Shown: positions 11,291 through 28,606 of the stretch, piece after piece
Layout of the letters: each line of letters starts with the position of its first letter
Numbering within the stretch: position 1 is the first letter of the stretch
From: Klebsormidium nitens
Lineage: Eukaryota > Plantae > Klebsormidiophyceae
DNA: 64,000 bases
Assembly (NCBI GenBank): GCA_000708835.1
Contig: DF237389.1
Location: 1 to 64,000, forward strand
Direction of reading: 5' to 3'
Made by a program: the position numbers and the translations under genes
Notes under the pieces: model-generated
Database searches by the model: none
Seen by the model: only the letters and a program-made list of their open reading frames with translations
What the model was told of the DNA's origin: nothing

Positions 11291-23701
<12,411 letters not shown>

Positions 23702-23884
23702 TGCTTCGCTCGCGACGTGCGTCGATTGGACTTTTCTGAAGACAACTAACAACGAGGACGGACAGCTGCACTGCCGTTGCAGACTCTCTAGAGATGCTAG
23801 CTGCTTTTAGCCGCATTTGCCTCAGGCTCCCTCCCATATGGAAACGCAACCGTGAAAGCTTTTGCTGCTTGCATTGAGCCGGGT

Positions 23885-23899
23885 TTTCTAGAAGCTTTC
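23885..23899. promoter_or_regulatory. Heat-shock-element-like motif in the Hsp70/VLRF1 divergent promoter
   Basis: tTTCt aGAAg cTTTc matches the inverted nGAAn trimer consensus with one mismatch and lies about 185 bp upstream of the Hsp70 ATG. Confidence 0.5.
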
Positions 23900-24220
23900 T
23901 GGTTGGCGACAAGTGGCGCCAGTTGGCTCAGGCTTGCCAAAAGTGAAATGTCATCGGGCTTCCTAACCGTCGATGATACTTTGCCACACGCATTCGACGG
24001 CTTGTAGAATTTGTAGCGAACAATGATGTCCAACTGGCAAGTTTCGATGCCGCACTGGCAGTTTGCTGCCAGAACCTGCTGGAATGTCGGATGTCCCCCG
24101 TCCTAGTTCGCAGCTCGTTTTGCCAGAAGAACGAAGAGCTCTCTCTAGAGTCTAGGGAGGCCCATTTTCTCTGCTGGTGGTGCTCACGGTTACGGCTGCT
24201 GTAATTCTCAAATTGAAGCA

Positions 24221-26698
24221 ATGCACGCTGCTATTCGTGGAAGTGCCAGAAACACTTCTTTAATAAAGCTACACAAACTCTGTCGGCCGAGGGAAAGTGG
24301 GCGACAGACCGAGGTTGGGGAGATCTTCACTTGTCCCCTGGCATCATCTTCTCGTCTTTGCTTTCGTCTTTCATTTCAATCTGCATACCTCTGCACCAAT
24401 TCAAACAGTCAGCGGCATAGATTGCTGGTGAAAGCAGCCCGGAAGGAAAGCTCGGTAGATAAAGCCACCTTTGAAGAGTGGCTTGCAGCAAACCCCTTGC
24501 CTTCCGCAGCAAGTTATCAAGTTCAAAGCCCTGAACGGAAAGCTGAGGAGGTTGTCCTCTCAAGTTCATCACAGGAGCTGATTCATCGGTCTGATTCAGG
24601 GGGGCTTAATGAACGAGCCAGCAAACAGAAAGGCGAACTTGACCGACTGGAACCACAGTGGTGTGACTCAGCATTGTCTGTTCAGAAGGGGGAAAGTGCG
24701 CACATTGTGCCAGCGCTTTTAGTTCAAGCTCCTTCCGTTGATTGGTCAAAGATTCAAAATGGGGCGCCGACAGTGCGCTCTCATTTCCTTGACAGTCTAG
24801 GACAAAGCAAAAGGTCGAGCGGCAGCCATGGTCACTGGAGAAGCTTCAGTTGGAAGGAGACAGGAGAATCTCTGCAGCGGTTGCTACATCAGGGAAGGCA
24901 GCTGTATTGGTGTCCTGAGAGCAGGAGCTTTGTAGAGGTGGATCTGGACACTAGAGCGCCAGTCTTTTGCTTTGTGCCACCAAGTATGCAGAGTTGGGGA
25001 ATGAGACAAGGCGCTATCTTAAGTGTTGGGCACTTCCTCGACCAGCTTCAACAAAGTCACGAGTCTGCTCAAGGGAAAATCAGTTTAGCCCAGCAAAAGT
25101 TGCATCAAAGACAAGCGGGATCTGTGCAGCCTACAGCAGGAGAGGAATCCATGGAAGAGACTGGATTACAGGGGAGCCAGAATCGTCCTGAGTTGCAAGC
25201 TCCTGAGCTTCTGACGGTGCAGTCTTCGGATGATTCTCGTGAGGACGGAGTGTCATTCTCTGATTCAATGATTCAGACCTTGGATCAGAGCCCTGAAGAC
25301 CCTTCACATTCAATCAGCCTGGCGGCCCCGACCAAAGCAGGACCGAAACAGCTCAGAAGGGTAAGAAGGCTGTCACTTCTCCGCCGGAAGGAGAAGCATC
25401 TGGTGATATTGCTGACGTCAGCAGCGGCAGCGCTGTGCATCTGGGAGGATGGGCAGCTGGTGCGGCACAAAGTGATCACCGCTTACACGGTGCGCGCAAA
25501 GCAGGGCAAGTCGCAGCTGAATCACATGAGGGGGAAAACGGGCGGGGGGCTGAGCGTAGGAGGGTCGTTGCGGATGCAAGAAACTGCCCGCCTCTTTATT
25601 AGAGTCAACGAGGTGAGGTGATTCAAAGTCAGTGAGGTGATTGACTGTGGCTGCTCGTTCAGACCCCATAGAAGGGGAACACGGGGCTGCCCTGGAACCT
25701 CCCCGTGCTAAAAGCCCATCCATTCGAAGGCCCTATTCAGTCGCTGATGTTAGAGGCCAGGCAGCCTTCTGAAGGTAGCTTTCAGAATCCACATTCTTCA
25801 TTCGCCAAGTTTTGCAGGCCCTTGTTACTTGCGGGATCGTTTCGAAAGATCTCAGGAGACTTAGAGAGGAACGAATCTACGATCCTCAGGGAGTACTCCA
25901 CTTGCGTTTAGCCCCTTTCGAGCAGTGAGAGCCACTGATCCCTTTCTACTTCTTGCGCTCCAGGCCCTCTGGTTTCAGATGATGCGTACGCGCTGTTGCG
26001 AAGCTCCCAAGCAAGCATTGTTCCGAAAAAAAATCATACGGACGTTCCTGTTCTTGCAGAAGCTGACGGAATGGGCTGACGCCCTCGAGGGCTGCGGAGC
26101 TCTTTTTCACAGTGGCCCGATCCGCGCCTGGAATGAGGTTGGCCCCGACACCTTCCACGTGGATTCGACCATGCAACGTGGATGTTCGCTGATTGGTAGC
26201 AGGCTTGTGTCCCTGAAAGTTCGATTCGTATCTTCCTTCCTTCTTCTCTCGTCGTCTTGGCGACCAAACTCCCCACGTTCTTTGCGTGAGCGGCTCTTTT
26301 CGTGCTGCACTCCAATCAAATAATAGGACCCCACTTCCAGAGAAGGTCTATCTCTATTTGGCAACCATGTCGCAACTCCCACTCGTCATGCAAGGCCTTC
26401 CTGAACGTCGCCAATCAAGGAAATTCGCCTAACCAGCGCCCCGCTTTATCTGAACACTGGAGCTGACCTCAGGAAATAGGGACCTGGTTGCGGAAGTGGC
26501 TACTTTGGCGAAGAGTCAGGTTCAAAGTTGTGTGCGTGTTTGCAGGTCTTCTCGTGTCGTGATGTGCCATGTCCGCTGGATCGAAGGGACCCTCGATGGG
26601 TGCGCGTGGGTCTGAGCACACAAAAGCCGAGGCTGAAAGAGCTGCAAAGGTGGGCTCTCCGGTTGGGAAAAGCTGCCCTGCTCAGCCTTCAGTTGTAG
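24221..26698 (+). CDS. VLRF1-family (Vms1/ANKZF1-like eRF1 homolog) peptidyl-tRNA release domain protein with long N-terminal extension, putatively plastid-targeted
   Basis: Exons 24221-25612, 26060-26137 and 26546-26698 splice in frame to 540 aa. The C-terminal domain LVILL..AAAALCIWEDGQLVRHKVITAYTVRAKQGKSQ...GGSLRMQETARLF...LDRRDPRW..VGLSTQKPRLKELQR matches recalled VLRF1 motifs (HKxFxRYTVRAKxGxxQ; DPR..I...T.RPT..EL.R). Confidence 0.8.
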
Positions 26699-28606
26699 TT
26701 TGCAATCAGGAATTATTTAGGCACTTGATTTACAACATGACGGTTCCGACGTTCGTGAGGTTGCAGTCATCGTTGTTGTATGGGCTGGATTCAGGACTAG
26801 CTCTCTAGTCCTGAATCCACGTAAGAAATCAATGGTCTGCAAGGAGATTTTGGAGATTGTGCGGGTGTCACTGTACATACTGAATACTGAGGATCGATAT
26901 GCTTTTGCAGGATATGCTACATCCTGAGCCATGGTGCGATGGGCCCAATCGACTGAGAGCGTTGGCTTTCATACTTGCGGGGTGCTTGTGTTTCGAAATG
27001 AGCCTGGGTCAGCAATTACAACGAATCTAATACTCGAGTCAGGTTTGTATTAGCATGTTGCTCAATAGGCCCCCGAAGAATCTTGCACATTCGACATGCC
27101 GGTGGCCCCCTGTTACGCTTTGACGGCGATTGAGGAGAAAACTCGTGAACGACCGAGTTGGTCGTCGGATCATATCATGGAAGCCTGCAGACAAGTTTCA
27201 AAGGTCAACCCATGTGTTATAACTGAGCCTTTGACCGGACAGTTGACCGCAAGGCTAGCAGTAGTGGATTAATTGGTTCGACGGTCACTAATGTGTCGAT
27301 CCGATTCAATCCGGTTACCGTCGGGCGGCAAGGGCCGTTCGATGCATAAGCAGCTAATTGTGCTTATACATAATATCAATCGTATTGCGGTCCAGCTGTC
27401 GTGCCCGCGGGCGCGCAGCATATGCTATCTACACGTATGTCCTCGATCCTCGATCTATCCGCGCCAATCGATCGGCCCATGCAGCGCGGCCTCCTGTGGC
27501 TCCCGGCACCCTGACTGGCCCCACTGGCATCGATCTCTACCATATTGAACACTCGCAGCTAGCTTGCCGCGGGCCCGGGCATGATATATCATGCATAACA
27601 ATGCAAATGATCGATATGTACGTACAGCCGCGGACTCATGCAATATCGAGGTCCATTTGGTCCCATGATATAGCTAGCTGTCGTGGCCTTATAAATTGAG
27701 TTAGCTCGCGAATCCATTGCACATACATGCGCCACTGGCCCAATTGCACGGATCTACTGAGTGACTTTGACAACATAAATATGTCCGATTACCGCCACTC
27801 AGTGCATGCGCGTTGTCGGAACGAAATTCGAATGATAGCGCTAGGTCGATTCCAGCTTCCGCGCCGGCCGGGCGGCCATGCAGAGCCATAGCTGGTCCGG
27901 GTCCGGACGTATCTAGCGGCCTCATGGAGCCACATGCGATATGTGGAGCTCAACGTACTTGCAGCTATAGACGGTACTAACTAAGGATTGAACTAATTCA
28001 ATCAAAGAATGTATGGATTATTTATAACAGGAGAACCATGCACTGTGACCGGATCATATCGAAGCTGAATCGCACGCACCCACACTGACACTTGGAAGCT
28101 TTTGGATGAACTCGGACGGGTCTGAGGGGAATCAATCAAATCACTGTACGAGCATGTCGGAAGCGTATGCATACAACCGTGAATGATTTCTTGAACGATC
28201 CAATCAAATGATTGGTTCGACATGCGTTACACTGGCACGTCGTCAGTTTCTTGACTGCACCTTGAGCAGGTTTGGAATTGCATCATCGCTAGATGCAACA
28301 CCGCAATCAGGATTGTAAGTGTATATATCAAAGGCCTCAAGTTCAACAAATCAAATATCTTTGCAGGTGGACTTCCATTGAGACGTAAGTATAAACAGCG
28401 GAGTATGGTTGAAAGCAGATTTTCCGGTGGGCTCGATAGCAACCTGACCATACCACACGAGGATGAGGAATGGACTAACCTAGCAACAACCTGATTCCAA
28501 GTGCTCAGAGCCTACTTCTGTATACAAGAATCTGTTGCCTGCACACCCTGAACATTGTCCTGTGGTTGCAAACGAAACCAGCCGCTCTTACAGCCCCTCC
28601 ATGTGC

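Follow-up and report, generated by a model that had tools for sequence, protein, structure and literature searches.

A bVLRF-1-type protein with an organelle-style leader in Klebsormidium nitens and its green relatives: a candidate release factor for organellar ribosomes

Vms1/ANKZF1 is a cytosolic factor in ribosome-associated quality control (RQC) that binds the 60S-peptidyl-tRNA complex and frees the nascent chain, either by cutting the 3′ CCA end of the tRNA or by hydrolysing the peptidyl-tRNA. The first 64,000 nucleotides of contig DF237389.1 of the alga Klebsormidium nitens (GenBank assembly GCA_000708835.1, forward strand; this whole stretch is called the window below) carry a gene for a protein with a VLRF1 domain, the release-factor domain of Vms1. 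Which kind of VLRF1 protein is it, and on which ribosomes would it act? The original prediction, made from the sequence alone, was a bacterial-type domain behind a plastid-like presequence. We found that the protein lies outside the sampled Vms1 clade and is far more like bVLRF-1, the prokaryotic Vms1-like release-factor family of Burroughs & Aravind 2019 (PMC6514570), a result that is robust. We read it as a green-lineage release factor of the bVLRF-1 type and of bacterial origin that would be imported into an organelle and act on the large ribosomal subunit, and we put the probability of this reading as a whole at roughly 55%.

The gene occupies positions 24221–26956 of the + strand, has four exons and encodes 539 amino acids (aa). 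This structure comes from assembled transcript contigs of four runs, each from a different study (X1, X9, X10 and X12), over the region 23700–27300. The borders of the first three exons had been placed correctly in the original prediction. A third intron (26650–26910) had been missed; its removal turns the expected 540 aa into 539 aa, with the tail ...KELQR-ICYILSHGAMGPID and a stop codon ending at 26956, and the last 16 residues of the formerly proposed tail, ...WALRLGKAALLSLQL, are read-through of that intron. The mRNA contigs start about 80–95 nt 5′ of the ATG at 24221. Since no ATG precedes this one and an in-frame stop lies at 24146, the mRNA includes the leader of the protein, with 24221 as its first start codon; transcription does not begin downstream of the putative presequence. 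The parts of the gene and of its product are listed below, where L001 and L002 are two related contigs and P0004 is the public K. nitens protein model.

24125–24220, + strand: 5′ untranslated leader (contig starts at 24125–24145; no ATG; in-frame stop at 24146)
24221–25612, + strand: exon 1, coding part, residues 1–464 (GT donor at 25613 backed by joints in four runs)
24221–24439, + strand: leader, residues 1–73, a candidate organellar presequence by its composition, ending ...RLLVKAA
24470–24502, + strand: FEEWLAANPLP motif, residues 84–94, in alignments the first conserved element after the leader
24830–25006, + strand: bVLRF-1-type N-terminal extension, residues 204–262, WRSFSWKET...LYWCPESRSFVEV...FVPP (prokaryotic profile)
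25007–25390, + strand: linker of about 128 residues, Gln/Ser/Glu-rich, from the N-terminal extension to the core (alignment, composition)
25391–25612, + strand: VLRF1 core, first part, residues 391–464 (Pfam and alignments)
25466–25516, + strand: catalytic loop region HKVITAYTVRAKQGKSQ, residues 416–432, His416 to Gln432 (alignments)
25613–26059, + strand: intron 1, GT..AG (joints in X1, X9, X10 and X12)
26060–26137, + strand: exon 2, residues 465–490, VLRF1 core (joints; kept in L001 at 93% and in L002 at 69%)
26138–26545, + strand: intron 2, GT..AG (transcript joints)
26546–26649, + strand: exon 3, VLRF1 core, ending DPRWVRVGLSTQKPRLKELQ- (Pfam, transcripts, relatives)
26650–26910, + strand: intron 3, GT..AG (joint 26647/26909, cut +2, in four of four runs)
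26911–26956, + strand: exon 4, coding part, R-ICYILSHGAMGPID then stop (transcripts; kept in L001 and L002; identical to P0004)
26957–27270, + strand: 3′ untranslated region (contig ends at 27138–27270)

All four exons are kept in L001 and L002. Exon 1 is 57% identical to K. nitens in L001 and 40% in L002, exon 4 is 82–88% identical in both, and at an identity of just 40–57% the open reading frame (ORF) stays open across 464 codons with all indels in frame. The gene is nuclear, spliced and expressed.

Low-depth contigs of run X1 retain intron 1 (window 25583–26087) and intron 2 (26110–26573) at a word depth of 5–13, compared to 62–125 for the spliced exons, and short pieces of intron 1 are present in other runs too. 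The intron-retaining contigs are unspliced precursors or traces of DNA. One X1 contig has an extra A within an A-run at position 26025 of intron 1, which is a length variation or a homopolymer assembly error.

The last 190 residues are identical to P0004 (GAQ88565.1, KFL_004400030, UniProt A0A1Y1IC80), a model automatically named 'VLRF1 domain-containing protein'. This model has 190 aa, starts at the internal Met350 and lacks the 349 N-terminal residues (window 24221–25268). Taken at face value, it would mean that only the short product from Met350 is made and that the upstream ORF goes untranslated. We regard this as very improbable, given the transcript starts before the first ATG and the 349 upstream codons, which are open and conserved at the protein level in relatives, including the N-terminal extension found in all family members.

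What does the conserved end of the protein look like? The C-terminal 149 aa form a VLRF1 domain with an intact GKSQ catalytic loop. Pfam family PF18826 matches residues 395–463 of exon 1 (E 4.7e-11, 43.3 bits with a cut-off of 27, profile positions 3–72) and a second time exon 3 (profile positions 106–140), with exon 2 bridging the two, so that the spliced + strand ORF from 24221 with a C-terminal VLRF1 domain stands as predicted. So does the active-site loop with its catalytic Gln: GKSQ corresponds to residues 429–432 of HKVITAYTVRAKQGKSQ, and Gln432 aligns with the Gln of GGSQ in yeast Vms1. Against the Protein Data Bank (PDB), P0004 matches the chains of yeast Vms1 with E 5e-4 over 119 residues, with the His, Tyr and Arg of HK....Y..R aligned; the exon-1 profile found no Vms1 in the PDB because that query covers only half the domain. 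In an alignment of 30 green and prokaryotic sequences, the His, Tyr, Arg, Gly and Gln never vary, and Vms1 has them too.

An AlphaFold2 model of residues 375–539, built on an alignment of 86 sequences, has a mean predicted local distance difference test score (pLDDT) of 86.5. Its top Foldseek matches are the Vms1-60S structures 6R84 and 6R87 (query TM-score, TMq, 0.65) and 5WHG, with a TMq range of 0.56–0.66 over these three Vms1 entries, followed by Balon, eRF1 and aRF1. By its fold, its G-x-(tiny)-Q loop and its profile match, the protein belongs to the aeRF1 superfamily's VLRF-1 clade. The Balon-ribosome complexes among the fold matches would suit a hibernation or occupancy factor that binds the ribosome and is no release enzyme. 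Such a role is highly unlikely for this protein: its best fold matches are Vms1, and neither the family nor its prokaryotic relatives show variation in the G-x-x-Q loop or the His/Tyr/Arg set.

The modules that surround the domain in canonical Vms1 were looked for as well. In a Pfam search the protein shows no C2H2 zinc finger, ankyrin repeat or VATC, and regular expressions found neither a C2H2 pattern nor a VCP-interacting motif (VIM; R-x5-A-A-x2-R), although a divergent VIM could escape such a pattern; the lack of a C2H2 finger, ankyrin repeats and a Cdc48/p97-binding motif had been anticipated. The same Pfam search detects Ank and/or VATC in the canonical controls L167, L143 and L119 (metagenome proteins), and PF18826 is the sole Pfam family that it finds in P0005 and, at significance, in P0012. 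The K. nitens protein ends 5 residues past the core domain.

The domain had been described as stand-alone, which does not hold. We built a hidden Markov model (HMM) from 51 full-length bVLRF-1 proteins of 180–260 aa. Because this prokaryotic HMM aligns, through its positions 5–55, to K. nitens residues 206–255 as well as to the core, residues 204–262 are the N-terminal extension, an element common to bVLRF-1 and eVLRF-1, the eukaryotic Vms1/ANKZF1 type (Burroughs & Aravind 2019, PMC6514570). In compact orthologues the same HMM aligns contiguously over the whole prokaryotic protein. The linker that follows the extension in K. nitens is lineage-specific: three Klebsormidium-like relatives conserve it poorly, and other homologues have a short one or none. 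An alignment with these three relatives shows a near-invariant VLRF1 core and conserved N-terminal motifs within a remainder that is 40–57% identical. The FEEWLAANPLP motif is specific to the green family and absent from the prokaryotic members.

For P0007, a compact orthologue, a model (pLDDT 82.5) predicts a disordered leader (pLDDT under 50), a short helix for the FExFLAANPLP motif (pLDDT 86) and a folded alpha/beta unit for the N-terminal extension (pLDDT 93–97); with this unit the structural match to Vms1 grows from 160 to 220–250 columns. An atlas search with K. nitens residues 78–285 gave no usable match. The layout of the green proteins is a variable basic leader, F(E/D)xWLxxNPLP, the bVLRF-1 N-terminal extension and a VLRF1 core that ends just past the domain, to which K. 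nitens adds the linker.

How far does this family extend? An exhaustive HMMER search with the exon-1 profile over 1.84 billion representatives (E up to 1e-3) gave 214 matches. The best 150 of the 214 are either eukaryotic, at about 200–750 aa and with leader, motif, extension and core, or prokaryotic, at about 200–250 aa; no canonical Vms1 layout was seen among these 150 when the sequences were read. Word-index protein searches returned 3–4 close relatives and no canonical Vms1, which is uninformative on absence. The green members come from streptophyte algae (Klebsormidium, Chlorokybus, Spirogloea and Closterium), bryophytes (the liverwort Calypogeia and the moss Sphagnum), chlorophytes and prasinophytes (Cymbomonas, Tetraselmis, Myrmecia, Apatococcus and Bryopsis), Volvocales (Edaphochlamys, Pleodorina, Gonium and Volvox) and Prasinoderma. 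The family thus spans Viridiplantae, bryophytes included, and its proposed restriction to streptophyte algae was too narrow. No vascular plant is among the roughly 30 matches with an identified organism. With so many public angiosperm proteomes, this suggests, without proving it, that the family was lost or has strongly diverged in vascular plants. The expectation that the protein is undescribed agrees with a full-text literature search, in which no green-lineage or organellar VLRF1 was found; subscription journals and the supplement of PMC6514570 were outside its scope.

In reference genomes, prokaryotic homologues occur in Planctomycetota including Ca. Uabimicrobium, in Cytophagales and other Bacteroidota, and in Calditrichota; further ones come from Myxococcota/Deltaproteobacteria, Spirochaetia, Bdellovibrionales and Asgard archaea. 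We rejected a simple inheritance from the plastid (cyanobacterial) endosymbiont because no cyanobacterium is found among the best 80 of 286 prokaryotic loci.

Is the protein of the bacterial type or a form of Vms1? The name of the Pfam family, 'bVLRF1' or 'Bacteroidetes VLRF1', was tried as a sign of bacterial type and rejected. When PF18826 was scored on L163, L103, P0035, P0118, P0005 and P0012, fungal Vms1 reached 189–204 bits, bacteria 107–111 and green proteins 82–90; as fungal Vms1 outscores bacteria, the name is no guide to type. The loop signature HKV..AY.VR.KQGKSQ, on which the bacterial affinity had first been argued, is likewise weak as an argument because canonical Vms1 carries nearly the same loop (HKTFHRYTTRRKQGGSQ). 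We therefore compared profiles built for each group. Canonical Vms1 was sampled by back-translating the Vms1 loop into a DNA pattern and scanning metagenome contigs with it; the resulting set holds only fungal or protist ORFs of at least 380 aa, some of them confirmed with Ank and/or VATC.

The same sampling returned short ORFs of exon size whose Vms1 loop is of the animal type (HKTFHRYTVRAKRG...), namely L089, L104, L115, L126, L127, L145, L149, L156, L164, L166, L172 and L194. Short fragments with this loop (metagenome loci L083–L196) were left out of the HMMs and trees.

The K. nitens core scores 134.5 bits with the prokaryotic profile compared to 52.8 with the Vms1 profile, so the claim of a closer affinity to bVLRF1 than to ANKZF1 holds on these grounds. 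The medians tell the same: green family members reach 100 bits with the prokaryotic profile and 51 with that of Vms1, prokaryotic sequences 97 bits with the green profile and 51 with that of Vms1, and Vms1 sequences 56 bits with the prokaryotic and 61 with the green profile. Green and prokaryotic members thus resemble each other closely and stand at the same distance from Vms1. All sampled Vms1 have Arg just before the invariant Tyr, where the green family has Ala or Gly. YT(V)R and S-x-G-x-x-x-R are common to green members and Vms1, and most bacteria have YMVR and R-x-G-S-R-x-R there.

Two maximum-likelihood trees of 123 and 61 rows were inferred under LG+C20 with posterior mean site frequencies (PMSF) and no outgroup. 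The green family is one clade in both (100/99 and 100/100). In the 123-row tree, Vms1 comes out as a single clade (100/100) whose stem exceeds 2 changes per site, and the green clade adjoins a pair of Planctomycetota metagenome-assembled genomes (MAGs; 66/80) within a green and prokaryotic set of 37 rows (86/94). In the 61-row tree, 13 green and 9 prokaryotic rows (Planctomycetota MAG, Ca. Uabimicrobium and relatives) form a set with support of 96/94. Ten fungal and protist Vms1 rows make a 100/100 clade that leaves out the K. nitens protein. By similarity, the nearest proteins are bVLRF-1 of the Planctomycetota type.

The trees also bear on a different history, in which the green family would be an ancient eukaryotic sister of Vms1 that kept an ancestral bVLRF-1-like form and survives only in Viridiplantae. 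An approximately unbiased (AU) test on the 61 rows does not reject green and Vms1 sequences as one group (delta lnL 1.5, p 0.46), the long Vms1 stem makes the position of that clade unstable, and the shared YT(V)R and S-x-G-x-x-x-R fit such a history. It would nonetheless require losses in every other eukaryotic supergroup; the free trees put the green clade with Planctomycetota-type sequences, a branch with the prokaryotic rows as one whole side occurs in no bootstrap tree out of 200 for the 61 rows and in 10% of the bootstraps for the 123 rows, and by HMM score green members are twice as similar to prokaryotic ones as to Vms1. We consider this history somewhat unlikely. Since the family is restricted to Viridiplantae, a separate acquisition from bacteria is the more parsimonious reading. 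It is not demonstrated, because the AU test does not reject the grouping with Vms1; of the proposed lateral origin, the affinity to a bacterial type stands and the separateness from Vms1 in descent does not yet.

The Asgard bVLRF-1 proteins (L011, L012 and L060, from Promethearchaeota, Hodarchaeota and Heimdallarchaeota) group inside a large prokaryotic clade and adjoin neither Vms1 nor the green family in the trees.

Where in the cell would the protein work? The 73 residues of the K. nitens leader contain 12 Arg and Lys, 14 Ser and Thr and 3 Asp and Glu, in keeping with the acid-poor N-terminus up to RLLVKAA that had been noted at the outset. About 35 distinct homologues have a leader of 24–113 residues directly before an invariant F(E/D)x(W/F)Lxx-N-P-L-P. 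The sequence of these leaders is not conserved; they are rich in Arg and Lys, often in Ser, Ala and Cys, and poor in Asp and Glu. A variable leader before an invariant motif, together with its predicted disorder, has the look of a cleaved organellar presequence. Judging from these features, import of the protein into an organelle is probable.

The choice of organelle is closer. Streptophyte leaders are long (73–113 aa) and Ser/Pro/Ala-rich, as in Klebsormidium, Closterium, Sphagnum and Calypogeia, a form more often met in plastid transit peptides. The same enzyme might instead be imported into mitochondria and rescue split mitoribosomal large subunits with peptidyl-tRNA: mitoribosomes are also of bacterial type, many orthologue leaders are 24–60 aa long, Arg-rich and free of acidic residues (P0006, P0020 and P0034), and those of a Prasinoderma-like cluster have 16–18 Arg and Lys in 60 residues. 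However, it is known that plastid transit peptides of chlorophytes look like mitochondrial presequences, and a plastid-bearing lineage is the only one in which the family has been seen. The question is not decided by any of these points. A mitochondrial site is rather unlikely in our view; the plastid is slightly favoured, and dual targeting may be possible.

Alternatively, the N-terminus may be no targeting signal, and the protein a cytosolic VLRF1 paralogue that works alongside canonical Vms1, either with 60S subunits or in some other cytosolic function. The catalytic set common to the protein and Vms1 and the presence of some acidic residues in the leader would be compatible with this. We think it improbable, as every Vms1 module for coupling to Cdc48 and 60S RQC is missing, the closest similarity is to proteins that work with 70S ribosomes, and non-conserved basic leaders of very different lengths right before an invariant motif are the usual pattern of cleaved presequences.

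How could an imported bVLRF-1-type protein act? Its leader would be a cleavable presequence that carries it into the organelle, where it would do what Vms1 does on 60S subunits. It may bind the A-site side of a split large subunit of the 50S type that still holds peptidyl-tRNA, left, for example, by collided plastid ribosomes that MutS2 has split. The GKSQ loop would extend to the peptidyl-transferase centre and release the nascent chain there, either through hydrolysis or through removal of the CCA end from the tRNA. The same chemistry as in Vms1 is argued from the His/Tyr/Arg/G-x-x-Q set, which is invariant in green and prokaryotic proteins, and a large subunit of the 70S type as the substrate from the prokaryotic affinity together with the leader. 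Most likely, the gene would have been gained from a bacterium before the green lineages diverged and lost in vascular plants.

Rice Vms1 works on 60S and yields cP-deltaCCA-tRNAs (PMC11831146). MutS2 has been implicated in plastid ribosome quality control, its downstream players being 'entirely uncharacterized', and no bacterial-type RqcH or RqcP was found in Arabidopsis (2025 preprint, 10.1101/2025.09.02.673837). A narrower version of the proposal would name the donor and the step: a Vms1-fold factor from a Planctomycetota-like bacterium, imported into an organelle, performing the final step of plastid or mitochondrial RQC after MutS2, possibly by clipping CCA, and lost in vascular plants. 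We advance this version only tentatively.

Several observations weigh against an imported release factor of bacterial origin. On the side of targeting, three Glu occur among the first 35 residues of the leader in K. nitens, and several chlorophyte leaders and that of Prasinoderma are short and very Arg-rich, like mitochondrial presequences. On the side of origin, besides the AU test, the Vms1 rows of the trees are fungal and protist only; the lack of a cyanobacterial homologue among the loci mentioned above counts here as well, and the organism was identified for only about 30 of the matches. On the side of activity, we know of none shown for any bVLRF-1-type protein.

Compared to bVLRF-1, the K. 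nitens protein has the same two-part build of N-terminal extension and VLRF1 core, ends right after the core, keeps the positions that never vary (His, Tyr, Arg, G-x-x-Q, Gly and Arg), scores high with the prokaryotic HMM (134.5 bits) and, in the free trees, groups with the Planctomycetota-type members. In contrast to bVLRF-1, its gene is nuclear with three spliced GT..AG introns and does not sit in a bacterial or archaeal genome. Green proteins add the leader and FEEWLxxNPLP, and Klebsormidium adds the linker of about 128 aa; green members have SADSAALG where bVLRF-1 has QAGxAALG, YTVR where bVLRF-1 has YMVR, and a Gly-rich stretch where bVLRF-1 has KTKGKSR.

With Vms1/ANKZF1 it shares the fold (Foldseek 6R84, 6R87 and 5WHG), an N-terminal extension that matches structurally, and the loop H-K-x-x-x-x-Y-T-x-R-x-K-Q-G-x-S-Q, in which Gln432 falls under the Gln of GGSQ. 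It differs from Vms1/ANKZF1 in lacking a Rei1-type zinc finger, ankyrin repeats, VATC and a VIM, in falling outside the sampled clade (100/100) and in scoring only 52.8 bits to the Vms1 HMM; its compartment and ribosome type probably differ as well. Its proposed job, release on stalled organellar ribosomes by a nuclear-encoded imported protein, resembles that of the single-component rescue factors ArfB/ICT1, the plastid ArfB At1g62850 and mtRF-R/C12orf65 (10.1101/2025.09.02.673837). Their fold, the GGQ domain of bacterial release factors, is unrelated, whereas the domain here is of the aeRF1 M-domain type, and ArfB acts on 70S ribosomes with an empty A site while a Vms1-like factor would be expected on split large subunits.

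A link between bVLRF-1 and tRNA 3′-end repair is hinted at by P0118, a metagenomic protein of 395 aa in which a bVLRF-1 domain (88–232) is fused to a PolyA_pol head domain (265–391, E 6e-19) of the CCA-adding-enzyme family. A conserved neighbourhood with a CCA-adding enzyme was rejected: an ORF of the GGxVRD type lies within 3 kb in 0 of 80 prokaryotic genome loci.

Upstream of the VLRF1 gene, and head-to-head with it, stands a gene for a DnaK-type Hsp70 with an Ala/Ser-rich N-terminal extension. Some 280 bp separate the points at which the two transcripts begin. The relative L001 (L001:79-2409, 57% identical) has this gene pair too, and it was not seen in L002. The pair could be two genes of organellar proteostasis that share a bidirectional promoter.

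23459–23843, − strand: start of the Hsp70 neighbour (sequence and transcript contigs)

What does the finding mean for this family? The VLRF1 fold itself is known; what is new is that a eukaryotic lineage has a protein of the bVLRF-1 type and that this protein carries an organelle-style leader. In practical terms, the public K. nitens model is short by 349 residues, and the Pfam name 'bVLRF1' misleads on type. The family is a testable candidate for the release of peptidyl-tRNA from split plastid large subunits in algae and bryophytes, with tractable hosts among relatives of Chlamydomonas, Marchantia-like liverworts and mosses. It would also give a first functional handle on the prokaryotic bVLRF-1 family and, if the organellar role is true, the green proteins would be a case of the Vms1 fold working on ribosomes of the 70S type.

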